Below, piece by piece: positions 37,207 to 61,330 of a DNA stretch of 64,000 nucleotides. Origin of the DNA: Anthoceros angustus (Eukaryota > Plantae > Anthocerotophyta); the NCBI GenBank assembly GCA_010909165.1, contig VJWM01000016.1, forward strand, positions 620,001 through 684,000, read 5' to 3'. A model generated the notes under the pieces. That model was not told the DNA's origin and ran no database searches. It saw only the letters and a list, made by a program, of their open reading frames with translations. Each line of letters starts with the position of its first letter. The stretch's first letter is position 1. The position numbers and the translations under genes were made by a program.

Positions 37207-40200
37207 ATGATCATGCCAGGCTCTCGTAAGAAAGAATGCCTGAGCCGACGAACCAACAGGCTCGCCCAGGATCTAGAATCACAAAGGTTCCACAGAGAAC
37301 AAAGTTACCTAAAAGAGGCACAAGAGAATCTATGGCACTACGCCTGGATCAGGACATGCTCAATGCTCCTTGTAATCGCTGAAGAATTGCACCTCCGAGG
37401 CTTCGTCGACCCAAGCGACTACGACTGGGCATACGTAGATTTCTCCTTCCTATTCACAGATTAAGAAATACAAAACAATCCACAATGGTCAGGCACTTCA
37501 CAACCATAGTCAGTGTGCACAGCCCATTCAACCCAACAGAATTGAAAGAATCCATCATCTGCAGCCTACATAATCTCTGCAGACAGAACTGCCTCCTGAT
37601 AGTACCTGGTTCACCGGACAACCTATATGTGCTGCCCCCAGCAATCGAAATCGAGGGCATGGCCCCCTCTTCCATCAGTCTGTCAAAGGAAGATCGTTTT
37701 GACGGCCAGCAACACAACTTCGCAGTATGGAAGTTTCGCATCACCGAAATTCAAGGAACGAAACTCGGACTTTTGTGGGAGGCGTCGCAACCCTCCCGCT
37801 GCCACCCCACGACCGAGCCAACGCCACGCAGCAGAAAGAGGATTGGGAAGATCGAATCAACAAGCTAAAAACATTCTCATGCAATCCATGAGATCGTGCC
37901 ATGTCCAACAAATCGCGGGGAGGCGGGCGCAGCCGGCTGGCGGCAACTACATGACATTTATGCCTCAGACATCATGCACACTGCACACCATTAAAATTTC
38001 TTGGACTTAGAATGTCCGACCAGTGGATCAACACACCATTAATTTGTGGATGACGGTTCACAGCCCCGCCCTCAAGAGGACCTCTCTGCAGCTCTCCTCT
38101 TATCCACCTTACAGGTCTCACAGGTAAGCGTGGTGCAATCCCCGCAAGGCGTCCAACCGCTCACCCTTAACAAGGTCATCGGTAATCTTGTTGAAGAGGC
38201 TAGAAGGAAACTACACGCCTACTCATTTACGGAGAATCTTCCTCACGGGCCTTCTTCACGGGGCCGCGATCCAGGGGCGAGGTCGTGGAAATTTCGAGGC
38301 GAACAGAGGCGAGGCACTTACCCCAACAGAGGCGTGGTAATTATAATCCCTCATGGAAACTAGTATGTGGATCTTGCCAAAATCCCGCCATACCTACGAA
38401 GAATGTAGGAAGCGGTTGGCGTAGGCAACCCAAGGCACCAACAATCGGGGCAACTTGCCTCACCATGAAGAGACACTCAAGGGCTTTTCTCACACAAGTG
38501 AGTCACCTACCGGTCCAACCAGCCCTTTAGCCCTCGTAGCCTCTTGTCTCTCAGCCCATGACCAACACACAGTACATAGATTGAGCCTCCCGGATATGAC
38601 CCCACACCACGAATATTTTAGCCACGTCAATACCAAAGACACCCCACTCTTTGTCGTGCCAGGGCGACACCAAGCACCCTATCTCGAGTCACGGCACAGC
38701 CGACCTACGTCAAGCCAATTCAACCTTACAAATCTCTGGAGGTCACTGTAGCCTAACGAAGAACCTCTTCTCGATCGGAAAGTGGATCGATCCGTATATA
38801 CGCTTTGGAGGAGGCCATTGCATAATCGAGACCCCACAAGGGGACCTCCAGCCAGGGGACTGCAGGCGATGATCTCTATCACCTCAACGTTACTACCTCC
38901 CTGCGCCCACCCTCCTCCTTATCTCGCAGCAACCAACACGAGTGCATCTTATTTATGGCACGCACGCCTTGGACACATGCATACTCAGCGGATGAAGGAC
39001 ATGTTAAAACTCGAGCGCAGCGCACCACCACTCACGGGGTTGAAGACTTTGGTATATGTGATGCCTCACTAGGCAAAAGCCATCGCTCCCCATTTCCAAA
39101 AGGACCCTCGGCGAGGCGAGCGAAGACTCCAACTTGTACACACCGACTTATGTGGCCCTTTCCAACGATCACTCTTTGGATACCTTTATTTTATGCCTGT
39201 GATAGACGACTACTCTCGCTTCAGGTGCTCTACCCATCAACACAAGGCACGATCACTCACTTGCCTCCAGGACTACAAAACCTGGGCCGAAAAGCAAACT
39301 GGAGAACACCTACTTACCATTCGTACAGACGGAGGTGGTGAATTCAACTCCAACCAGTTCGCAGTGCATGCAGATCACGGGATCGGCGGGCGGTCACTAC
39401 TCCACACCTCTCGGAGCAGGGGTAGCGAGCGGATGAGCAGAACCATACAGGACTGCGGTCTATCCATGCTGATTCATGCAGGCCTTCCCAAAAGCTACTG
39501 GCCTGAAGCCATGTCTCACGCAGTGTACATTCTGAACCGGAGCCTTACCTCCTCCCTGCCCCAACTTACCCCTTTTGAAGCCTGGACAGGGTCAAAGCCC
39601 GACCTCTCGACACTCAGAATATTCGGCTCAACTGTATATGTTCATACACCCAAGGCTACCCGGACAAAGCTCGACAATCGAGCACAGAAGTACATTTTCA
39701 TCGGATTTTCCGACGGCGTGAAGGGATACAAGCTTATCCATCCACAGACCCACAGGATCACTCACTCACGAGATGTCCTGTTCATGGAAGACATGCAGCG
39801 CCCTTCTTCAGTGGGAGCATCGAACCCCCAGGTTCCCCAATCTGCACACACGGAGGACAGCGATGAGGACGACATCGACCTCTCCGGCCCCCCACCCCAC
39901 GGCACTCCTCCACCCGTCCCTCACCAACCGCTCCCTCCACCCCTGCCCGTGCAGCCTCCCCCCACACCCCTACCTGCACAATCAGCTCCGGGCGCTCGGC
40001 CACAATCAGACATCCTCTTTGGGGACTTCGACATTCCAGAATTGGCAGTCCCAGGCTCACCTGCATCAACGCCCTCGGACTCCAGCAGGCGCCATCGCCT
40101 CGGGCGGCGGGGACAGCGAGCTCGGCAGCGGCCCACAGGGCGAGGCTCGCATCACGGCCTCGCGCGCGCTCCCACGCGCCGCAGCATGACCCGCGCGCCG

Positions 40201-43130
40201 CCCGGCCCCTCGCAGCTCCATGGCGGCAGTGCACCCGCCGCCTCCCGGCGCCGCGACACCTTCCAGCCCCCACGCCTCGGGCGCTCACCACGCCTGGATC
40301 GAGCCGCCACCATGGCGCACTCAGGCGCCAAGACAGCGCATCGCGACCGGCCTCTCGATCCTCCACCAGAACTCGCCTCCTCGGCTCTCCTTCTCGACCC
40401 GACACGGTTCTTCACCGTATAATACTTCAAGCAATTTTATTATCCGGCACTCCAAAGGCAAGTAGAAATATTTATGGCGCTTATCCTATTTCGGATATTC
40501 CAAATATACGATAATGCGGATCGACCTCGACACTCAGTATCTACCAACTCATATGTTCATACACCCAAGGCTAGGGCTCGACAATCGAGCATGTACATTT
40601 TCATCGGATTTTCCGGCGGCGTGAAGGATACAAGCTTATCCATCCACGGACCCACGGATCACTCACTCACGAGATGTCCTGCTCATGGAAGACATGCGGC
40701 GCCCTTCTTGATGGGAGCATCGAACCCCGGTTCCCAATGCACACACGGAGGGCTGATGAGGACGACATCGACCTCTCCCCCCACCCCACGGCACTCCTCC
40801 ACCCGTCCCTCACCAACCGCTCCCTCCACCCCTGCGGCCTCCCCCACACCCCCACCCCTACACTCCTCGGGCGCTCGCCACAATCGACATCCTCTTTGGG
40901 GACTTGACATTCAGGCGGCCCCAGGCTCACCTGCATCAACGCCCTCGGACTCCAGCAGGCGCCATCGCCTCGAGCGACGGGCGGGGACCAGGCGACAGCG
41001 GCCCACAGGGCGAGGCTCGCATCGGCGCCTCCGGGCGCGCTCCCACGCGCCAACGGCCGCATGAGGCGGACCCATGGCCGCCGGCCTCCGACGCAGCTCC
41101 ATGGCAGCAGGTGCACCCGCGCCCTCGGCGCGACACCTTGGCAGCCCCCACGCCTCGGGATCGAGCCGCCACCATGGCCGCCGCCTCAGGATCAGGCCGC
41201 CACCATGGCCGCACTCCAGGCGCCAGCACCAGCGCGCATCGCGACCAGGCGCCTCTCTACGATCCTCCACCAGCAACTCGCTTCCTCGGCTCTCCTTCTC
41301 GACCCGACACGGGTTCTTCACCGTATAATACTTCAAACGAATTTCGGCATTATCCCGGCACTCCAAAGGCAAGTAGAAATATTTATGACGCTTATCCTAT
41401 TTCGGATATTCCAAATATACCAGATAATGCCGGATCTGAAGACCTCGACTTCGATGACACCATGGACGATATGCCACAACAACCTGATAGCACTAACGAC
41501 ACTAGGGGAAGACGCTCTCAGCGCACCAATGCTGGTAAAATACGGAGGTACTCCCCTACTAACTGGAGAGACCCTAAAAACACTTTAGCTTATTGCCTTA
41601 CCGCAGCTATAGATCAGTTTGTTCCAGCTACCTATCAGGATGCCATCACTTGCCCAGAAAAGGAGAACTGGAAGAAGGCCATCAGGTCAGAATTAGATTA
41701 ATTAAGAGCTAATAAAACTTGGAAACTAACCACATTACCTAAGGGTAGGAAGTTAGTTGGCTCTAAGTGGAACTTTAAGATTAAACTAAACGCAGATGGC
41801 AGCATAGAGAGATACAAAGCCAGATTAGTCGCCAAAGGGTACTCAGAAAACACGGTTCCTACGAGACTTTTAGCCCGGTACTCAAAATTACCTCCTTAAG
41901 GATCCTAATGGCCTTAGCTGCTCACCATGATTATGAGTTGATGCAGCTAGATATTAAAACAGCATTTCTCTACGGCGATCTCAAACACAAGATCTTCATG
42001 GAAATGAAGGTATACAAGTTAATAACAATGAGTTTAATGCCTGTGAATTATTAAAGGCACTTTACGGACTCAGACAAAGTGCTCTTGAATGGTATGACAA
42101 ATTAGACACTACCCTTCAGGACCTAGGCTTCACCAGGTTAAGCTCAGATAGTAATATCTATATCAATAGGCAAAATGGTCACTTCATTGTTCTAGGAGTC
42201 TACGTCGACGACATCGTCCTAATGTCTAACTCAAAGCAAGTCCTAGAAAACACTCGCAAGATGCTCGCTGAGCGGTTCTCAATGACCACATGCCGTGAGC
42301 TTTCCTTTTGTCTAGGGATTCAAATTGTTAGAGATAGAAAGGCTAGAAGTCTATTTATTCATCAATCTAAATATATACAAGAGATTTTAGTTAAGTACAA
42401 AATGATAGATTCTAAGCCTATAGCCACTCCTATGGAGACTAACCAAAAGCTAGCGAGGATGATGATGATGATCAACATGAGGCAAAATGACTACGGCAGG
42501 CGGTGCCCTACTCTTCCGCTCTCGGGCGTGATGTATTTGATGGTCCGCACTGCACGGACCTTGCATTTTCGGTGGGAGCTTTATCTAAGTTCTTATCCGC
42601 TCCTACTCAAGCTCATTGGAAGGCACTAAAGAGGATCTTTAGGTACTTAAGAGCAACCTCAGATACGGGACTGCTCTACCACTCTCAGATCCAAGAGGAC
42701 CAACATCTACAACTCGAGGCGTTGACGGCCTTGGTGGGCAACAGAGACAACAGAAAGAGCATAAGCAGCTATGTTTTCTTACTTGGCGGAACGCAACAAG
42801 CTGGAGCAAGCGACAACAAGCAGTTGCACTCGGCTCCAGGCCGTATTGCTCTTTAACCCACGCGTGCAAGGAAGGACTTTGGCGCTTTATGAGCTAGCCG
42901 AACTAGGAGAAATTCAACAAATACCAAGACCTTGCATGCGACAACCAGGTGCCATCTCGCTAACATACTCCAAGTTCCATGCTCGAACTAAGCATGTGGA
43001 GGTACAATTTCACTTTATAAGACAAGTAGTTAGCGATGGCAAATTCTCCGTGCTTCTTGCCAAAGCGGATGAGACGTGCTCACCAAGGCACTCAGCAAAG
43101 TGAAACACCAGGAACACTCCTTTAACATGG
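37207..43130 (+). pseudogene. Copia gag-pol, frameshifted in this sequence
   Basis: DRFDGQQHNFAVWKFR (gag); degenerate CCHC near 38365; LWHARLGH; IRTDGGGEF and YWPEAM...YILNR (integrase); RYKARLVAKG, LYGLRQ and YVDD (RT); KHVEVQFHFIR (RNase H). Confidence 0.92.
39650..41420. repeat. ~0.9-kb tandem duplication of the integrase C-terminus and linker (39650-40520 / 40540-41420)
   Basis: Matching blocks with indel differences. Confidence 0.85.
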
Positions 43131-48508: not shown

Positions 48509-50595
48509 TAGCTGGGATTCTTGTTTCGTGGTTGGGTTGATTTGGTTTGGTAGCAGTAGCGGTAGCAGTAGCGCAAGTGTCTCCTGCAGGAGGGAGTAGT
48601 AGAGCATTTGGTGCACATGCTGAGCAGCCTGGACCTCCTATGCTTCTTCACAACGCCTACACATGTTCATGCCGCCCTTCAGGTGAGAATCCTAAGCCTT
48701 CCACCATTTTCATGTCTGGTAGTCTGCAATTACTTTTCCACCACTCGAATTTCCTTTGGATGAAGCTCTTAACCAGTCTCTACTGTGTGCCATGATGTTG
48801 CACCTGTAGGGCCGTGCTTTCCTGACGGCAGCCACGAGGGGCTGTCATGATGTTCTAAATTACGTACTCCACGAGGATCGATTGGCCCAGGCGCCCACCA
48901 TTCCGCATGCTGCCCCGGTCAACAGCTGCTGCCACCGCATGTTCGCATATCCTGACAAGCACCATAGCATGTCAGTCTTGGGCGGATGATGAGCTCAGCA
49001 GCTGTTTTGGACTTTCCCGAAATTTATCCGGGCAGACTCTGTAGTCCATGGCCATTGCCTCTACGTCAGTGTACACTTGTAATCCATGTACAGTATGGAC
49101 ATCTCAATCAGTCCCTTTTTGCATCAGTCGACTATTCGCATAGGTCGAGATGGTTTCGGTCGAGGTACTTCGTGGATGTTGGATTCTCCGCTCTCTCCAA
49201 AGTTCCAGCTAACCAGCGTGCCCTGAACAAGAACTGCTATTACAGCAGCCTACTCAAGTAGAGACCTGAATGAAAAGTAGCACAAACTCGGTTCAGGATC
49301 ATCCTGAGCGTTGCATCTACTTGAGAGATCACCAAGTATTACCTAGCCTTGTGACCGGGGGAGTACAGTTCCTGAAGGTCTAGATTAATATTAACAACAT
49401 GTCTGATGACTACTACTTTAAGGTTGAGGGGATTTATACGCCTAGGATGCAGTCTTCCATCTGAGAGGCAACCCTGCGCTTCTCACTAGTATACATGCCA
49501 GCCATGACTGCATGATAATCGTTTTCACACATTGAGAAAAAAAGACTAAATTTAGAAGGGAGCTACTGAAACATGTCCAATTGTATCATGCAGAGGATAA
49601 AATGTGCACTGTTCAGCAAACTCTTCTCTATCGTACGTTCTTATTCTTCTCCCAGATGTATAATAGCGCTCATACAGTAATGCATGATGGAGATGAGCAA
49701 TTTCTCCCATTCTGAGGGGCTACGACGTAGCATGAACTTGTCACTGCTGTTGCTGGGCAGTGCACGGGGGACCATCAACAGTCTGCCATGAGAAGGTTCC
49801 AAACTGGAAGGGTATGAAACGTGACAATCCTGGCCCAATCATGAAACGTCCACAGTTCAGTCGGAATGCCTTTGCTCTGAACAAATGATTCCAGCCGTTT
49901 GCAATTCCCCTATATACGGCAATCCTTTGACCTGCTCAGGAACGATCTAATGTCCTAACATCACCATTGTCCAGGACTCCAGATGGTGCAGCGATCCCCC
50001 ACATGCGTACAGCCATGGACCACATTTTGCAAATCTCAGCGCAGCTAATGAGCATTCCCCCCTACTGCTCTGCACTCCAGATCCAGCAGGTGCTAGATTC
50101 AAAATTTATCATGATTTAGTCCACAATCAGACGTCTGTACGCCTGTCCTCCTGTGTCTGTGCCCAACTCTGGCAGAGGGGCAGCAACTCTGCTGCCGACT
50201 TCGGCTCTGCTCTTGGCGAGTCCTCGAAGGATCACAGTATAGCGCGCGCCCAAGCACTCGACTCTACCTTCGAACTGGAGGCATTGACATCCACGAGCAG
50301 TGCAGGTACGCAGGTCGAGAGGAATTTACATCATTTCAAGCCAGTTCCTGGAGCAATATCCAAAGGCCCTTGTAGGTGCTCACTTGCTCGTCAGCTGGCT
50401 ACAAGCTGAATCGGGCCAATAGTGTTCTGTTTGGGAATCCACTGACGTTTCAACGGCCAGAGACTTCATGCAGAGGATGATGCCACAGAGGTGGTCGACA
50501 GCACAGCAGAGCCTTGCGGCCAATTGGTTTGAGAGGGGAGTTCTAATGTCGGGTCTAGTTGTACAATTTAACGAAACAGAATGCAGGCTGGAGGG

Positions 50596-50928
50596 TTACG
50601 ACGGACGAGATCGTAATTCAGCTTTTGCTGAACCAGGGCCTGCCTGCCTGTTGGCCTTCAGATGCGCAGGGACTGAAGGACTATTTGGCCCACTTCTGAG
50701 CTGTTGCAGCGGTGATCTCTCAGATGCCCCCCTAGTCCAGGATGTCTCAGACTCTGAGAAAGTCATCATCTTGGCTTCCTCCATGCTTTTCATAGCCACT
50801 GGTGGTAAGCGATTCTCTCCTGAAACAGGTCCTTTCTTCCTATCTTGCGTGTTCCCTTCAGCTTCAAGAGGTGCACAGGCAATCTGCTTCAAGCTTTCGA
50901 GCTCTCTTTGCAAACCCCTGTTTTTCCT
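50596..50928 (-). CDS. Probable downstream exon of the giant coiled-coil gene
   Basis: AAACAG acceptor followed by KNRGLQRELESLKQ...; a GTAAGC donor candidate lies near 51230. Confidence 0.45.
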   Translation of the reverse strand, partial: RKNRGLQRELESLKQIACAPLEAEGNTQDRKKGPVSGENRLPPVAMKSMEEAKMMTFSESETSWTRGASERSPLQQLRSGPNSPSVPAHLKANRQAGPGSAKAELRSRPS

Positions 50929-51095
50929 GTTTACAAACAACCGGACCATGGGTCAGCCATATGCTCGGACCCTTACCAGTAACCCAAACAACACAAACAA
51001 CGAAAGAACTGCCTAGTTTCCACAATACCTCTCCATCGCTTCCACTTTTTTTTCAAGGGCAATGTTTTTCCTGTATTGAACAAATCAAAGAAATG

Positions 51096-54000
51096 TCACC
51101 ACATGGCTACTGTTGCAAATGAGGGGGTGTGCACAGGAGAACATGCCACGCAATATCTAGAAGGACTGTGCCAGACATACCTTACAAGTGAGTCGCAGAG
51201 TTCCAAGTGATGACTGAACACTTCAGGGCTTACATTTCTCCCTGTCAAGTCCGTATCGCTTTCAACCTTAGTCCCACCCACGGGCAGCACATGCTGCAAG
51301 TCAGATCTTAGATTCAAAATCTCCTCGCGAAGCTCAGTTATAGTTCGTCTCTGAACACTCATATGCACCACAGCTGTTTCCATATCTGTGACCACAGGTT
51401 CCTCTGCATTCGATATTTGATACCCTCTTTCTTCAGATACTCGCTGGCTCCCACTAGGACCTGCAGTGGCCGGGCAGATGATCTTTTCTGCCTCTGTTTC
51501 GACTGCATCCGACAGACTTTCACTGCTTGAGGACAGATCATCTATTCTCCGCATTTTCTTCCTTATCCGCACAACATTGTGATCATCACCACCTGTCCTG
51601 GCTTCACCATGGACAGCACTTATGTCATTCAAAACCCGCTTATGAGTCACCGCCATCTGCATATGAAGAGAAGTGTTTGTTTTCCGGTTCTGCTCAAGCT
51701 GTTCAAGAACTTGCACGAGCTTGTCTTTTCTTGCCAGATTTTGCTCCCTTCCCTTAGCAACCTCCAGCTGCAACCTTTGATTCACCTCCTCTAGAGACTT
51801 CTCCCGTTCTTTGCTTGCAGCAACTTCACGAAGCAGCTCATCCAAGTCAATCCTTGCTTTCTCCTGACCTTCTTCTGCTCTCGACTCGAACGCCAAAAGC
51901 CTTTCGTTGACAGCCTCCAGTTCCTTTTGTTTCCTCGCAATGGTCTGTTGTGCTTCTTCTACGGACGAGATGAATTGTAGGACCTTCTGCCTGTTTTCCT
52001 TCAAGTCACATTCCGTGTTCCGGAGGAGATCCTGCATTGCCAGCATTTGTTCTTTCGCTTCTGCCGCTTTTCTCTCAGCCGAGCGAAGGCTTGTCGATAA
52101 TGTATCCACCTCCACCTGCTTCTCTAGAAGCAAACCTTGTACTGCCTGCAGAGATGACACTTGAGCATCGGCCTTTCCCGTCTCCTGTACTATCCGAGAG
52201 TTGGCCTTCGCTAGCAACTCCTGTACACTGAAGAGCCTTGTGTGCGTCTCCGCCACTTCTCCCTGGGCTTCTAATAGCTTTTTTGTTACCAACGAATTCC
52301 TCCCCGTCTGCTCTGCTAGCTCATTCATAGTTTCAATCAGAGCCAGTTGCATGGCATGGAGTTTCTCATGGGACTCGGTCGCTCCTGACTCAACATCTGA
52401 AGACTTCAGCAGGAGGAACGCAGCCTTCTCTGTCGCTTCGTTCACCTCGTTCTCTGCCTTACGCAACAACTCCTGCAATGCAAGGACTTGCTGGCAAGCA
52501 TCACCCCTATCCTGCTCAGCACGTGCCAGTTTTTCAGAAAGCACAGAAACCTTCCCTGTCTCTTCCTTCAGCTGAGAATCAGCATTTCGACTCTTCTCCT
52601 CCAGTTCTATCACTAGGGCTTCAAGCTCTCCTACCTTGCGCTGAAAGGTCTGATCCCGCTCCACCAACCGGTTATTAATCTCTCTGAGAGCTTCATCCGT
52701 TTCAACAACCGATTTTTGTAATGTCGAAACAAGCGCCTTTGCCTTCTCCAACTCATCCTGCAGAGCCAGCAGCTCACCTACTCGATCTTCCATCACCAAC
52801 ATCTGTTGACTAACTTCGTCCCGATCCTGGTTAGCAATTGACAACTTCTGCAAGAGTATTTTTACTTGTGCTTTCTCTTCCTTCAACTCCCCATCAACCT
52901 TTCGGACGGTTCCCCGCAAATCCTCGGCCATGGACTCCATCTTTTCTCTCTTCCCCTCGAATATCTGCTCGAGCTGCATTAGCCTGCTCTGAAGGTCTTT
53001 GAGCTGCTCTGCGGCTGAGGCGGCCTCCTGCTTTGCAGCTTCTAGATCATCACATAAGCGCTCCATCTCCCGTTCTTTCTGGGCGTAAGCACTCTCTCCA
53101 TCTGCCAGCTGCACCCTCAAGCTTGAAATTGCCCCTTCCATCGCTTCCTGCACTTCGGCCTTTAGTTTCAGCTTCTGTTCAAATTCAGCCAAAATGGCAT
53201 CCTTCTCCTCCACAGCAGCTTCAAGAACATCAACGCGACTGTCCAGTTCAGATTCTCTCCTCTGCCAACCAGCTGATTCCTTGTGAAGCTTGTGCATTTT
53301 TTGTGATAGGTCGTCAACCTCTGCTTTCCTGTGAGTATTTTTTGCAATCTGCTCTTGAAGAAAGCATTCCAGTTCAATCATCTCTCCCTCTTTGCTTCTC
53401 AACTGCATTGCCAATTCCTCAAGCTGCTGCTGCAGGTTAGCTTCCTTTTTATCTCTCTGCAGCAAGGTGCTCTTTGCTTTGGATATTTCACTAGCTAAAT
53501 GCTGCACCGTCCACTCTGAAGCAGCCAAACTGTCTTCCTTGTCCCTAACCTGCTGATCAGCTTCCTCCAGTTTCTCCTGCAGATCTCGGATCTCCACTTC
53601 AGCTTCTCTCAACCGTGCACTCACTCGGTCTCCATTTTCAATTTTCACAAGGAGATCTTGCACCTGCACTTCTTTCAACGCCGCCTTCGTTTCTGCAGCA
53701 TCAAAATTTTGGCGAAGCAGCTCCATGCTCGCTCTGCTGCTGTCTGATTCCTCAACGGCGGCGGTCAGTTTCGCCTGCAAATTTTGCACTGAGAACTCAG
53801 CCATGTCTTTTGCAGCCAGCAACTGCCTGTTTTCGTTTCCCATCTGATTCAACTCGGCTTCTCTGTTCTCCAGATCCCGCAGCAAAGTAGCTCTCTCAAT
53901 CGAAACCGTATCAAGCTGAGAAGCAGTTTCGACGAGCTGCCGGTTGACAGCACCGAGATTCTGCTCCCAGGCCCGCGAAAGCCGATCCTGCTCCGAGGTC

Positions 54001-57000
54001 AAGCAGCGAATTTCCTCTGCCAATTTGGCTACTTCTTCCCCAAGGCCATCCCGGCAGGTCGTGGCCTCCTGAAGCTCACCTGCAGTTTCCTCGAGTTTCC
54101 TCTTCACATTTTCCAACTGCTGATCAGCCAAGCCTCCTCTTTCTTCTTGTTCTCGCAGTTGTTCCTCCAGTTGGGCATTGAGTTCAGATAATTGACGTGA
54201 TGCTGTGTCCCTTTCCTCCATCTCTGACCTGCTTCTCTCCGCATCATCGAGAAGTCTACTTAATCTAATCTGTAGAGATTCTACAATGGATGCCAGGGAT
54301 TCTTTCGCCGACAGTAGCTGCGTATTCTGCTGCTTTAACTCATCCACTTCCAGTTCTTTGATTTCCAGGTCCCTCAGCAGCGCATCCTTCTCCTGAAGAA
54401 GGGAATCCAGCGCTTTTGCTCCTTCGCCGGCTCTTTGCTGGAAGCTAGAGACTCTGTGTTCCCAGGCTTGCCACTGCTTCTCCTCCTCCATCTTCATAAG
54501 ATGAATGCTCTCCCGCAACGTCTCAACCTCGGAGAGAAGCTCATCTCGATACGAAACAGTAGTTTGCAGTTCTACGGCAGTTTCCTCAAGCTTAACCTTC
54601 AGGTCTTGAATTTTCTGCTCGGCTAAGCATTGCCGTTCTCCTTGCTGTTTCAAGCGGTTATCCAGATCACGGTTCTCTTCAGTTAACCTGTCTGCCTCCC
54701 TGCCGCCGTCGACAAGTTCCACCTTCATTCTCTCTGATTCTTCGACTAACCGTTCAAGCTTAGACTGCAAAGAAATCACTAAAGACTCTGCCGTTTCTTT
54801 TGAAGCCGTCAATCTCCTGTTCTCATCGGCCATCCTCAGCAATTCGGTCTCCTTACTTTCGAGGTCTCCCAATATTGCACCTCTTTCAGTCCGAAGCTGA
54901 TGAGTGGTTTCCTCAAGCTTCACCTTCAGGTCTTGAATTATCTGATCGGCTAGGCATTGCCGTTCTCCTTGCTGTGCTAGGCGATTATCAAGATCACGTT
55001 TCTCTTCAGTCAACCTGTCTGTCTCCCTGCCCCTTTCCTCAAGTTCCACCTTCATTCTCTCTGATTCTTCGACTAACCGTTCAAGCTTAGACTGCAAAGA
55101 AATCACTAAAGACTCTGCCGTTTCTTTTGAAGCCGTCAATCTCCTGTTCTCATCGGCCATCCTCAGCAATTCGGTCTCCTTACTTTCGAGGTCTCCCAAT
55201 ATTGCACCTCTTTCAGTCCGAAGCTGATGAGTGGTTTCCTCAAGCTTCACCTTCAGGTCCTGAATTATCTGATCGGCTAGGCATTGCCGTTCTCCTTGCT
55301 GTGCTAGGCGATTATCAAGATCACGTTTCTCTTCAGTCAACCTGTCTGTCTCCCTGCCCCTTTCCTCAAGTTCTGCCTTCATTCTCTCTGATTCTTCGAC
55401 TAGCCGTTCAAGCTTAGACTGCAAAGAAATCACTAAAGACTCTGCCGTTTCTTTTGAAGCCGTCAATCTCCTGTTCTCATCGGCCATCCTCAGCAATTCG
55501 GTCTCCTTGCTTTCGAGGTCTCCCAATATTGCACCTCTTTCAGTCCGAAGCTGATGAGTGGTTTCCTCAAGCTTCACCTTCAGGTCCTGAATTACCTGAT
55601 CGGCTGGGCATTGCCGTTCTCCTTGCTGTGCTAGGCGATTATCAAGATCACGTTTCTCTTCAGTCAACCTGTCTGTCTCCCTGCCCCTTTCCTCAAGTTC
55701 TGCCTTCATTCTCTGCTTCTTCGACTAATCGTTCAAGCTTAGACTGCAAAGAAATCACTAAAGACTCTGCCGTTTCTTTTGAAGCCGTCAATCTCCTGTT
55801 CTCATCGGCCATCCTCAGCAATTCGGTCTCCTTACTTTCGAGGTCTCCCAATATTGCACCTCTTTCAGTCTGAAGCTGATGAGTGGTTTCCTCAAGCTTC
55901 ACTTTCAGATCCTGAATTATTTGATCGGCTAGGCATTGCCGTTCTCCTTGCTGTGCTAGGCGATTATCAAGATCACGTTTCTCTTCAGTCAACCTGTCTG
56001 TCTCCCTGCCCCTTTCCTCAAGTTCTGCCTTCATTCTCGCTGATTCTTCGACTAGCCGTTCAAGCTTAGACTGCAAAGAAATCACTAAAGACTCTGCCGT
56101 TTCTTTTGAAGCCGTCAATCTCCTGTTCTCATCGGCCATCCTCAGCAATTCGGTCTCCTTACTTTCGAGGTCTCCCAATATTGCACCTCTTTCAGTCCGA
56201 AGCTGATGAGTGGTTTCCTCAAGCTTCACCTTCAGGTCCTGAATTACCTGATCGGCTAGGCATTGCCGTTCTCCTTGCTGTGCTAGGCGATTATCAAGAT
56301 CACGTTTCTCTTCAGTCAACCTGTCTGTCTCCCTGCCCCTTTCCTCAAGTTCTGCCTTCATTCTCTCTGCTTCTTCGACTAATCGTTCAAGCTTAGACTG
56401 CAAAGAAATCACTAAAGACTCTGCCGTTTCTTTTGAAGCCGTCAATCTCCTGTTCTCATCGGCCATCCTCAGCAATTCGGTCTCCTTACTTTCGAGGTCT
56501 CCCAATATTGCACCTCTTTCAGTCTGAAGCTGATGAGTGGTTTCCTCAAGCTTCACTTTCAGATCCTGAATTATTTGATCGGCTAGGCATTGCCGTTCTC
56601 CTTGCTGTGCTAGGCGATTATCAAGATCACGTTTCTCTTCAGTCAACCTGTCTGTCTCCCTGCCCCTTTCCTCAAGTTCTGCCTTCATTCTCGCTGCTTC
56701 TGCAGCTGATTGTTCAAGCTTGGACTGCAACGACTCCACAGAAAACTCAGCCATCTCTTTCACCGCCGTCAATCGCTTGATCTCATCCGCCATCCTTAGC
56801 AGTTCGGTCCCTCTACTTTCAAGGTCTCCCAGCATTGCACCCCGTTCGGTCTGGAGTTGCTTGGCGTTTTCCTCAAGCTTCATCGTCAGGTCCTGAATCC
56901 TCTGCTCGGCTAAGCATTGACGCTCGCCTTGCTGTGTCAAGCGGTCATCCAAATCACCCTTTTCTCGAGTCAACCTATTCATCTCCCTTCCCCGCTCCTC

Positions 57001-58854
57001 AAGTCCTGCCTTCATTTTCTCTGCTTCTACAGCTTGCTGCTCCAGCTCAGCCTTCAAAGACTTCACTGCAAACCCAGCCAGTTCATTTGCAGCCGCCATT
57101 CGCTTGTTCTCATCCGCCAATCTCAGCACTTCAGCCTCCTTACTCTCAAGATCTGCCAACATCGTATCTCGTTCTGTCTGAATCGACTGAAGGCGAGTTG
57201 AATTCTCCTTCAGCCGTTGTTCAAGTTGAGACAGCCTCTCATTCCAAGACTCCGACAGCCGCTTGTGTTCCGACGTCAACGTACTCTCCTGTTCGCGAAG
57301 TTGTTGGACCTCTGCCTCAAGGTCATCCCTGCCACCGATGGCTGTCCGCAACGCCTCCGTGGTTTCCTCCAGGGACGCCGTCAAAGAATTCAGACGCTGC
57401 TCCGCAACGGCCCCCCGTTGCGCAAACTCTTTGAGCTGCGTTTCTTGCTCGGCAATCCGCTCCGTCAGCTTACCAATCATTCTATCCTTTCCTTCCATCT
57501 CCGACCTGGTGCTATCTGTTTCTTGAACAAGTCGAGCCAACTTAGCCTGCAATGCCTGCATAGAACAATCAACCCCATCCTTCGAAGCCATCAGACGTCT
57601 ATTTTCCTCCTTCAGCCCGTTCATCTCAGCCTCCCTCGTTTCCAAGTCCTTCCATAGCGCAGTTCTCTCCTTGTTAAGCGAATCAATCTGGCTCGAACGT
57701 TCCTCAACCTTCGCCTCAAGCACAGAAACCGTCTGTTTCCACGCTTGCGCTTTCTTCAATTGCTGCTTCACGCTATACACTTCTTCCTGCAACCTATCTA
57801 CATCAGCAACAAGAACATCCCTAGCGACATTGGCCGCCTCCAACTCACCTGTAGCTTCTTCAACCTTCCTACTCATAACAAGCACCTGCTGCTCAGCGAC
57901 GGACTCACGGTGCCCTTGCTCCCGCACCTGCCCCGCCATTTCAGACTTCTGTTCAGCAGACCAGCGAGCTCTCTCCCTTTCCTCCATCTCCGACCTGCTC
58001 CTCTCCGCCTCATCAGTCAGCCGCGCCACCTTAGCCTGCAAAGCCTTCACCGCACCCTCACACATCTCTTTGGCCGCCAGAAGTCTCTTGTTCTCGTCCT
58101 TCATCCCCTGCACCTCAACATCCCGGCCTTCCAACAAACTCCACAGCTCACTCCTCTCCCTCCTTAACGCATCCACCTCCACCGCACCTTGTTCAACCTT
58201 CCGCTGCAGACTGGCAACCCTCCCTTCCCATCCCTGCGCTCTCTGCCTCTCCTTCAAACCATCCACCTCCTCTCGCAACCTCTCCACCTCCGACGCAAGG
58301 CCATCCCGAGCATCCACAGCCGCGCGCAACTCCCCGGCACTCTCCTCCAACTTCCTCTTCCACCCGAGCACCCCCTGCTCCGCATTAGCATCCCGTTCCG
58401 CCAGCTCCCTCACCCGCCTCTCCAAGCCTTCATTCCGCTCACTCAGCACCTCCGCCTCCCTCTCCTTCCCCGCAATCACGGCTTCCTTCACCTCCAATTC
58501 CTCCACCAGCTTCGCCACCTTCCCTTGCAACGTCTCCACAGTGAATGCAAACCTCTCCTTCCCTGCATTCAAGCCTTCATTCTCCTGCTTGGCAACAACC
58601 AACGCAGCCTCCCTGCTCTCCAAGTCCCTCAACATAGCCATCCTCTCCACTCTGGAAGCATCCAACTCTCCCGCGCCCGCGCTAAGCTGCCCCTGCAGCG
58701 CAGACACGGTCTGCCCCAAGCTCCTGATCTTCTGCTCGTACGCCATCCTCACCTCCAGCATCCTCTCCTCCACATCCTTCCCCCCCTTGACAACGCCGCC
58801 GCCCCCGAGGCCATCCTCCAATTCCTCCATCCCCATTCCCTTCCCCAAACCCAC
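51096..58854 (-). CDS. Giant coiled-coil repeat protein, about 2,590 aa in one exon-like stretch, split by a 2-bp deletion at ~55706-55716
   Basis: The 1053-aa and 1537-aa ORFs join if one CT is restored in a (CT)n run as in sibling repeats; the repeat period is 325 bp here versus 327 bp elsewhere. E/L/K/R/Q-rich with almost no Pro. Confidence 0.88.
54873..57159 (-). repeat. Seven 327-bp (109-aa) coding tandem units
   Basis: LGDLE anchors recur every 327 bp (one interval of 325). Confidence 0.95.
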
Positions 58855-59238: not shown

Positions 59239-59507
59239 GTTCGAGATCAGGAAAGGTCTACCTACAATTGGTGCCAATCACGTCACGTTTCATACGCTCG
59301 TTGCCGCCTTATAAATAGTGTTGGCCAGTTCGAGATCAGGAAAGGTCTACCTACAATTGGTGCCAATCACGTCACGTTTCATACGCTCGTTGCCGCCTTA
59401 TAAATAGTGTTGGCCAGTTCGAGATCAGGAAAGGTCTACCTACAATTGGTGCCAATCACGTCACGTCTCATACGCTCGTTGCCGCCTTATAAATAGTGTT
59501 GGCCAGT
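59239..59507 (+). promoter_or_regulatory. 89-bp unit x3, each with CCAAT, ACGTCACG and TATAAATA; likely triplicated LTR-type promoter
   Basis: Units start at 59239, 59328 and 59417, upstream of a plus-strand gag. Confidence 0.75.
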
Positions 59508-59596
59508 CCCTCTGCAGGGCGATGGATACCCGATGTCGAAAGAAAGCCACCACCGAGAAAGAGGGAGATAACTAGTTGACTATTGAACTACAGCGA

Positions 59597-59662
59597 GGCA
59601 TGTTATTATCAACTATTTGGCATGTTATTATCAACTATCGAGTTGATAATAACATGCCAAAT
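59597..59662. repeat. Perfect 22-bp hairpin (59615-59636 / 59641-59662, loop ATCG) plus an upstream direct copy of the arm
   Basis: GGCATGTTATTATCAACT occurs twice direct and once inverted. Confidence 0.92.
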
Positions 59663-59728: not shown

Positions 59729-60106
59729 ATGCTTTTTGACCCCGCTGATGATAGTGATGGTACTCAAGCATCAAGTACTTTGTTTGGAAGTTTATTTGAT
59801 ACTCAAGAGGCAGAAACTCATGTTGAAGAGTATTCCATATGGGATTTTTCTCCTCAAGCCATACAATTTAGATTAAATATAATGTGGGCACATTCTCATT
59901 CCCCTCCTATTCCTTTTACTCCTGTTAAGATAGAATTTAAGGATAGAGATAGATTTAATGGGTCCGATTACACCATATGGGCAATGAGAGTGTCGCAGAT
60001 TTTAGAAGAAAACGAATTCATTGGGGTTGTAGATGGGTCTGAACCTGCTCCTGCTACAAGAGCCGCCCCTGATGTCGTTTTGGATTGGCTACGGAAGGAC
60101 AAGTGA
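59729..60106 (+). pseudogene. Truncated copia gag N-terminus
   Basis: DRFNGSDYTIWAMRVSQILEENEFIGVVDGSEPAP. Confidence 0.8.
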
Positions 60107-61330
60107 TCCAAATATACGCAAGTGCCCTATGCAGGGCTTGTGTCCTATCCATCTCTCATAAGGAGTAGTCAAACCAAGCTCCATAGAAGGTAGTCGGTTG
60201 AGAACATAGTTAGCAACCATCAATGCCTCAGCCCAATATCCACGAGAGAGACTAGCAAAAGTGAGAGATGCCAAAGTAGCCTCCTGGAGTGTCCGGTTTT
60301 CCTCTCGGCAAGAGTTAGGCGGGAGTATACGCACGGTAAGCTGGTGATGGATCCCTTCCGAAGAGCAAAATTCACGAAAGCATTGTTGATGTACTCGCCA
60401 CCATTGTCATCACAGAAAATTTTAACCTTGTGACCTGTCTGCCGGGTTGCAAAATGCACATAGGTTTGAAAACACAGAAGAGCCTCGCTTTTATGTCTTA
60501 ACACATAAACAATACAATAGCGGCTCTATTCATCTATGAATGTAATAAGATAAACAGCTCCTCCAAATGAACTGGTGAACATAGTACCACAAATGTCACT
60601 ATGAATAGTATCCAAAAGGGCAAAGGCCCTTGTTGAGTGGAGATCCGTATATGGCTTAGAAAATGCTTTACTGAGTTAACAGGAGTTACAGAATGGGTGA
60701 CCAAAAGGGAGATAGGTAAGTGGATCTCTAAAACTATCACCCTTTGTTAGAGATGTTAGACGTTGAAAATTGACGTGGGCAAGACGACAATGCCAGAGTT
60801 GCATTGAAGCTTGTCTTTGAATGGCATTAACAAACTCAGTGGGCTGAGGTTGCACTATCGATTTGACATCTAATAAATACAAATCATGAAAAGGGGTGCC
60901 TATGAAAAGGTCCTAACTTGATGGAACATGCATTACAGTGCAACCAGATTGATCAAAGCAGACTCGGCAAGAGTGTTCTTGTGACAACTTAATCACTGAC
61001 ATCAAATTTTTGGTCATAGAAGGGACAAATAAAACACCAGAAAGTGTAAGTGAAGACTTGTCTGGGAGCTGTATGACCACTGAGCCCAAGCCTTTGATGG
61101 AAAGCCCACTGTCATCACCCAAAAGCACAAACTGATCGGCATCATATGTGGGTGAGAAAGTTTTAAATGAGTGTCTGTCAAAACAAATATGACTAGTGGC
61201 TCCTGAATCTAAAAACCAAGTTTCTACTTGAGAATGGACAGATGAAAGACAAATAGCTATGAGTGTGGGTGACTTAAACAGTGTCTAGGGAAAAACGGCT
61301 TAGACCACAAAGCCCTTTAAGGCTATGGGG
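60107..61330 (-). pseudogene. Degenerate copia pol (zinc knuckle, protease, GAG-pre-integrase, integrase), opposite orientation
   Basis: WFLDSGATSHIC; GVLFVPSMTKNLMSV; LWHCRLAHVN; CDDNGGEY; YWAEALMVANYVLNRLP. Confidence 0.88.

Follow-up and report, generated by a model that had tools for sequence, protein, structure and literature searches.

The window analysed here is a stretch of 64,000 nucleotides from the hornwort Anthoceros angustus (contig VJWM01000016.1, positions 620,001 to 684,000). Its minus strand carries a gene for what would be a very long, two-part, rod-forming coiled-coil protein. The features of this gene are listed below in window coordinates, with the basis for each in brackets.

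50596..58836, minus strand: whole coding span, three exons, about 2,676 codons with the frame break read through
51181..58836, minus strand: exon 1, about 7.66 kb, containing all modules, the conserved core and most of the tail (translations)
57160..58632, minus strand: long modules 1-3, of 163, 163 and 165 residues (anchor spacing, alignment, hidden Markov model (HMM) E values of 1e-57 to 1e-62)
54873..57159, minus strand: seven short units of 109 residues (327 bp) (Tandem Repeats Finder, pairwise differences, alignment)
55710..55714, minus strand: frame break, AG lost from an AG run in unit 8 (unit length and motif comparison)
53883..54872, minus strand: long modules 11 and 12, of 165 residues each (anchor spacing, alignment, HMM, AlphaFold2)
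52830..53882, minus strand: partial 13th module and conserved core (ten-ortholog alignment A3, AlphaFold2)
51071..51180, minus strand: intron 1, 110 nucleotides (nt), GT..AG (sequence and spliced RNA contigs)
51029..51070, minus strand: exon 2, 42 nt, coding KNIALEKKVEAME (sequence, RNA contigs and ortholog match)
50927..51028, minus strand: intron 2, 102 nt, GT..AG (sequence and RNA contigs)
50596..50926, minus strand: exon 3, 109 codons and a TAA stop at 50596-50598, beginning KNRGLQRELESL (translation)

The first ATG of the gene lies at 58836 on the minus strand. Exon 1 ends with ...CDSLV-R at 51181 and is followed by a GT donor at 51180, where the intron reads GTATGT. RNA contigs from two related species, at 90-95% identity, lack precisely 51071-51180 and 50927-51028, joining 51181 to 51070 with GT..AG ends on the minus strand, and a DNA contig of one related species retains both introns. 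A 100%-identical run of low depth (X1) has a loose end at 50928 that carries exon-2 letters. Since both introns are skipped in the RNA contigs, the gene is transcribed and spliced; its structure, transcription and splicing are established here. The comparison with public reads covers 50400-54570, i.e. a region outside the tandem array. The related-species contigs end about 209 nt past 54570, at the onset of the near-identical units, and the array is therefore probably present in those species too.

The same comparison turned up a length difference at 51412-51423, where RNA and DNA contigs of two related species carry 100 letters and the present genome carries 10, which amounts to about 30 residues gained or lost in the C-terminal tail, outside the coiled coil. 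It should also be noted that 311 nt at 54055-54365 are skipped, with GT..AG on the plus strand (antisense), in a single contig, short and of low depth, from a related species. This skip is weakly supported (24 letters on one side) and may be an antisense splice or a repeat artefact.

A preliminary description of this DNA took 51096-58854 as one continuous coding stretch. It consists of two long minus-strand open reading frames (ORFs), 55693-58854 (1,053 codons) and 51096-55709 (1,537 codons), which overlap by 17 bases and are separated by a 2-bp frame break. The limits given to the gene were also too short, as coding sequence runs past 51181 through the two introns to 50596. On translation, both ORFs are uninterrupted coiled-coil sequence. 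At the break, unit 8 reads GAGAATG where neighbouring units have GAGAGAATG, and it measures 325 bp instead of 327. Without read-through, the upstream ORF stops at 55693-55695, ending ...EEAENEGRT-stop at the point where neighbouring repeats read ...EEAERMKAELEERGRET; the downstream ORF begins MKAELEERGRET. Residue counts in this study use the read-through protein, with an X placed at the frame break (in scripts only), and searches were run with the exons and the ORF pieces as separate queries.

A polishing error in near-identical repeats seems a likelier source of the 2-bp loss than a true mutation, given that 1,537 codons stay open downstream and that the locus is transcribed. The alternative, which concerns the present genome only, is a fresh pseudogene in which a real 2-bp deletion would cut the protein short after some 1,050 residues. 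The assembly does contain both the deletion and the premature stop. However, a pseudogene would sit poorly with the long open frame beyond the break and with the splicing of its transcript. Furthermore, what is missing is one AG from an AG run, in a unit that is otherwise 1 base from unit 6, and such a loss is typical of assembly or polishing error in near-identical repeats. We therefore regard the pseudogene as somewhat unlikely.

The modular half of the protein was dissected using recurring anchor motifs. On the read-through protein, the anchors lie at residues 74, 237, 400, 565, 674, 783, 892, 1001, 1110, 1219, 1328, 1493 and 1658, which reproduces the spacing first proposed for this gene (163, 163 and 165 residues, seven times 109, then 165 and 165). 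The anchors had been given as LxDLE; their spacing is correct, but two of them read WSLLE and WKDLE, so the general type is L/W-x-x-L-E. Tandem Repeats Finder reports a 327-bp period for the array, with 7.9 copies, 92% matches and a score of 4059. Module HMM E-values range from 1e-25 to 1e-62; as ten of the long modules went into building this HMM, the short units alone test it independently. The module pattern is far beyond chance.

Module alignment bears out the suggestion that removing a single contiguous 56-residue block, which holds the conserved A/S-W segment, from the 165-residue module yields the 109-residue unit. The proposed arithmetic of the long module (165 = 22x7+11) also agrees with the sequence: heptad power is 2.45 at period 3.5, and a phase drift of about +60 degrees near columns 130-165 corresponds to a single stutter per module. 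AlphaFold2 predicts modules 11-12 (330 residues) as one helix spanning residues 2-329, with a mean predicted local distance difference test score of 84. The N-terminal half would thus be a continuous heptad coiled coil of 165-residue modules, each about 24.5 nm long with one stutter apiece. We also considered whether the 165-residue module is itself three 55-residue sequence repeats and rejected this, as autocorrelation at 54-55 is not raised; the third harmonic shows in the charge pattern alone.

Each short unit carries one Cys at a fixed position, as first described, in the same alignment column and within a QQGERQC motif; long module 11 also has a Cys in that column. Across the short units (54873-57159), this Cys adjoins a core Leu in a local heptad irregularity, with core spacing 73, 82, 87. 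It could permit an inter-chain disulfide in a parallel dimer.

Units 6-10 differ from one another at 1-10 of 327 bases, showing that most of the array is very young and lineage-specific. The divergence from units 6-10 is about 11% of positions for unit 5 and about 25% for unit 4. The near-identity of units 6 and 8 suggests that a two-unit block was duplicated, and the copy number of the array is probably variable. A relative found by word-index search in a genomic Logan contig (P0001) has the same intron positions and five long modules (163, 162, 165, 165 and 165 residues) with zero 109-residue units. The short-unit array is therefore specific to the close lineage of the present genome. A single in-frame deletion of 56 residues (eight heptads) may have made the 109-residue unit in this lineage, and unequal crossing-over would then have expanded it to seven copies.

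The C-terminal 1,081 residues of exon 1 were used as the query in an exhaustive phmmer search of 1.84 billion protein representatives. Just 11 proteins were found at E<=0.001, and E values of 2.6e-57 to 1.8e-10 link the query to proteins of three liverworts (Marchantia polymorpha Mp2g17480, also known as MARPO_0094s0016, Marchantia paleacea and Calypogeia fissa), the lycophytes Diphasiastrum complanatum and Selaginella moellendorffii, the fern Ceratopteris richardii, and Ginkgo biloba. Besides P0001, the long matches are uncharacterised proteins of 2,100-2,400 residues. A word search with the ortholog profile added only Riccia and one Logan protein, and a word-index search with the C-terminal tail as query gave no match; word-index protein searches were dominated by coiled-coil words. 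A gene tree of the core region left the Logan proteins unplaced.

The preliminary description asked whether homologs are limited to flagellated lineages. Those found, Riccia from the word search included, all come from plants that make flagellated sperm: the present genome's own lineage, liverworts, lycophytes, a fern and Ginkgo. Among the 1.84 billion representatives, phmmer gave no match in angiosperms, conifers, algae or animals, and none in mosses, cycads or charophytes; the lack of moss matches leaves a real gap in this distribution. As the Ginkgo protein is matched at E 5e-20, an angiosperm ortholog, if kept, should have been detected.

Two of the matched proteins have features of their own. 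The C-terminal half of P0007 (Selaginella XP_024539934, residues ~1100-2418) resembles a leucine-rich-repeat receptor kinase, with 24-residue repeats, and this RefSeq model is probably two genes merged by annotation. P0008 (Ceratopteris) has a 109-residue tandem duplication with 59% identity at residues 1080-1264, in C-terminal coiled coil outside the 165-residue region. The agreement of this length with that of the short unit is possibly a coincidence.

For each ortholog, BLOSUM autocorrelation was computed over the sequence that precedes the core. Six proteins, those of Marchantia, M. paleacea, Riccia, Calypogeia, Diphasiastrum and Ginkgo, have their top value at exactly 165 residues (z 4.2-4.8), and 330 is among the next peaks in most of them. 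In Selaginella (z 3.3) and Ceratopteris (z 2.9) the 165-residue peak is weaker, ranking second or third. Adjacent ortholog modules align ungapped at offset 165, the best diagonals being 165, 329/330 and 494. The window shares this N-terminal rod with a 165-residue super-repeat, its long modules measuring 163, 163, 165, 165 and 165 residues. Attempts to align the hornwort-type modules with the N-terminal modules of liverworts and lycophytes failed, the two being beyond BLAST recognition; the modules of this lineage have been re-homogenised. The lineages that share the 165-residue period have been separated for more than 400 million years. An exact 165-residue period in such diverse orthologs indicates that module length has been held since early land-plant divergence, and 165 is no multiple of 7.

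Length changes in the rod were examined in the same orthologs. The distance from the N-terminal motif to the core is exactly 615 residues in four liverworts, 780 in Diphasiastrum (615+165, one extra module) and 558 in Ginkgo (57 fewer), and some Selaginella modules measure 216-228 residues. The expectation that module indels would be multiples of about 55 residues holds in that they cluster near such values (+165, -57, -56, +51 to +63), but the agreement is inexact. Two annotated Diphasiastrum isoforms differ by 50 residues, a poorer fit.

Downstream of the modules, the conserved core carries the motif LAASEWTVQHLA at 53493-53528 on the minus strand, and the blocks that mark the family core (LAASEW[AT]VQQLA, KEGEL.EMECYL, MEGAIESLK and RLCEDLERAK) are present. 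Columns A161, S162 and V166 of alignment A3 (ten orthologs) are invariant. With this alignment, AlphaFold2 predicts the core as a pair of long helices separated by a low-confidence break that directly follows LAASEWTVQHLA and may be a hinge or docking site. Variable coiled coil separates the core from a C-terminal family block, HY[LV]ELCDSLVR followed by KN..LEK...RKN.GL, which is split by introns. In the window, exon 1 closes with HHLELCDSLVR, exon 2 contributes KNIALEKKVEAME and exon 3 opens with KNRGLQRELESL, and this block aligns with the orthologs: exon 2 matches the CDSLVR-KN..LEK block of Marchantia, Calypogeia, Diphasiastrum and Ginkgo, and the start of exon 3 aligns with the RKNRGLQ block of the liverwort proteins.

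Pfam scans of both ORFs and four orthologs gave generic coiled-coil matches below threshold, a PDB profile search gave unrelated coiled coils only (phage tail needle, sigma-1, keratin), and a feature search of the ESM Atlas gave generic coiled-coil clusters with low recognition. Mp2g17480, Mapoly0094s0016, Gb_15766, LOC9633810 and KP509_17G084600 do not occur in the literature text searched. We conclude that this is an unnamed, undescribed land-plant family, with Mp2g17480 as its Marchantia member. It is not a recognisable golgin, NMCP protein or myosin tail, identities that the preliminary description had named as alternatives: the Pfam scans gave no GRIP/GRAB, NMCP/CRWN signature or Myosin_tail_1 above threshold, and its Atlas neighbours are generic coiled coil.

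Several known systems resemble this family. BLD10/CEP135 (MpBLD10 in Marchantia), a fast-evolving long coiled coil of flagellated streptophytes, is required for basal bodies and spermatozoid shaping (bioRxiv 10.1101/2021.07.25.453666). Among fast-evolving coiled coils of plant sperm it is the only characterised one. The present family shares with BLD10/CEP135 the fast-evolving long coiled coil and a conserved block near the C-terminus. However, BLD10 has moss and Chlamydomonas orthologs, whereas phmmer found none for the Mp2g17480 family, and identity with BLD10 was rejected because MpBLD10 is Mapoly0001s0460, another locus. CCDC39/CCDC40 (FAP59/FAP172) form the 96-nm axonemal ruler, in which the length of a coiled coil fixes an interval equal to a whole number of 8-nm tubulin repeats along the microtubule. 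The mechanism proposed here is of this ruler type, but CCDC39/CCDC40 occur in nearly all ciliated eukaryotes and lack a 165-residue super-repeat. Membership in that family was rejected, there being no such Pfam match and the Mp2g17480-family matches being confined to land plants. Tropomyosin, a continuous coiled coil whose charge and sequence period is matched to the subunit repeat of a polymer, is a working analogy for the 55- and 165-residue periods; unlike the present protein, it is small and binds actin with a period of about 39 residues, and the Pfam Tropomyosin match is 18.4 bits against a cut-off of 38.6. SF-assemblin and rootletin are flagellar-root coiled coils that build cross-striated fibres beside microtubules, but no sequence relation to them was detected, their repeat lengths are different and they occur beyond land plants.

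Electron microscopists have described the multilayered structure and spline of plant spermatozoids since the 1960s. Our preferred reading, to which we give somewhat less than even weight, is that the family is a periodic scaffold of the swimming-sperm apparatus, with module length kept for register with a periodic partner, the tubulin lattice being the leading candidate. The gene structure with its transcription and splicing, the module anatomy, the conserved period and the taxon distribution are shown here; a sperm role and a microtubule partner are inferred. The protein would sit near the basal bodies, the spline microtubules or the multilayered structure's lamellar strip. Module length would stay constant because register with the periodic partner is needed. 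At 0.1485 nm per residue, 165, 109 and 56 residues correspond to 24.5, 16.2 and 8.3 nm, so that against an 8.2-nm tubulin-dimer lattice they would match about 3, 2 and 1 dimers. The ruler that the preliminary description proposed is partly supported: the distribution of homologs and the sizes of the indels both come out in its favour, and the conserved 165-residue period and a charge period near 55 residues would fit it.

A more specific form of this reading is decidedly doubtful. It would make the protein a hitherto unnamed component of the spline or lamellar strip, a ruler or scaffold specific to land-plant sperm, in which the 165-residue modules and a 55-residue sub-period register with three tubulin dimers and the 109-residue unit is a two-dimer variant that keeps the register. 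The lamellar strip consists of striated, electron-dense protein plates beneath the spline microtubules (bioRxiv 10.1101/2020.12.21.423647). No named lamellar-strip components were found in the literature searched, nor any protein specific to the multilayered structure or spline in the papers searched.

The 8-nm component of the scaffold reading can be related to charge periodicity. In four orthologs, Marchantia (4.6), Calypogeia (3.5), Diphasiastrum (4.8) and Ginkgo (3.0), a period of 54-55.5 residues gives the top peak of the charge periodogram; Riccia, Selaginella and P0001 have this period in second or third place. Within a pre-specified band of 54-56 residues, p is 0.001-0.036 in 6/8 orthologs when 7-residue blocks are shuffled, the eight proteins being related and hence not independent. 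In the present genome, a 54.5-residue peak comes first only when the whole mixed region is analysed, where it is partly forced by arithmetic. As support for the 8-nm idea, the sub-period is no more than suggestive.

A number of observations weigh against the scaffold reading. The relatedness of the orthologs in the charge test is one. In addition, the 55-residue peaks are not significant as global maxima (p ~0.1 or higher); as 55 is one (the third) among some 11 harmonics of 165, a fair prior is about 1 in 11; and the 54.5-residue signal is weak within the short-unit array itself (power 0.9). The Selaginella modules and the 57-residue difference in Ginkgo are only rough multiples of 55. A young array whose copy number probably varies speaks against a fixed total length, and the gene is frame-broken in the present assembly. 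Mosses gave no match in the phmmer search of the 1.84 billion representatives, and mosses also have a spline and multilayered structure. Transcripts of the relatives are full length in many runs of unstated tissue, so expression may extend beyond sperm. The 1.4 kb upstream of the gene contains 0 sites of the DUO1 consensus RRCSGTT, a result graded uninformative (the window average is 0.8 per kb). Finally, Mp2g17480 is not listed in the supplementary tables searched.

Several of these observations would be expected of a generic long coiled-coil spacer or tether, specially linked neither to sperm nor to microtubules, whose module lengths come from unequal crossing-over of an old repeat with the heptad frame alone under selection. 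On this view, the taxon pattern and the match to 8, 16 and 24 nm would both be accidents of gene loss. The youth of the array, the lack of moss matches, the transcripts from many runs and the empty DUO1 scan all fit such a tether, the whole-module gain in Diphasiastrum is ordinary tandem-repeat behaviour, and the Pfam matches are weak and generic. Against it stands an exact 165-residue period, outside the multiples of 7, that was kept though module sequences diverged beyond BLAST recognition. A gene that is kept in Ginkgo but gives no match in angiosperms, a well-sampled group, also shows the distribution classically associated with motile sperm. We consider the tether unlikely.

The charge sub-period can also be read without a tubulin partner. 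The 165-residue module and the sub-period of about 55 residues could govern how far neighbouring rods are offset along their axis, much as the 28-residue charge repeat does for myosin rods, to build a fibre or plate with a period of about 8 or 24.5 nm, e.g. the lamellar strip, in which the tubulin lattice is not directly read. A continuous, periodic rod with a charge period near 55 residues, restricted to plants with motile sperm, is consistent with this, as is the striated, protein-dense nature of the lamellar strip (bioRxiv 10.1101/2020.12.21.423647). Such a fibre is nevertheless quite unlikely, as seven 109-residue units would break a 165-based stagger unless only the sub-period matters, and the sub-period is weak inside the short units.

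Three near-perfect tandem copies of an 89-bp unit lie at 59239-59507, about 400-670 bp upstream of the start codon, each with a TATTTATAAGG box, ACGTGACGTG and CCAAT; they could be a promoter or enhancer module or be derived from a transposable element. Just upstream of them, at 59594-59642, a partly palindromic 22-bp unit (GGCATGTTATTATCAACTA...) occurs about twice. Directly upstream of the gene, a minus-strand frame at 60100-60400 resembles a copia-type integrase and would be a retrotransposon remnant, as would the plus-strand ORF 39193-40422, which matches the retroviral polymerase SH3-like domain (Pfam E 2.8e-28). The minus-strand ORF 10330-10893 matches DUF4218 (Pfam E 2.3e-25), a domain known from plant transposases. 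The region around this ORF (3-24 kb) is repetitive, with a composition that is strongly strand-skewed.

Restriction of the matches found to plants with motile sperm, structural size, the 165-residue period and a single-copy Marchantia ortholog, Mp2g17480, together make this family a concrete experimental handle. If the register with tubulin is real, the family would be a second, independently evolved coiled-coil ruler of microtubules after CCDC39/40, and the pair of 165- and 109-residue units would be a natural experiment on changing the length of a ruler.

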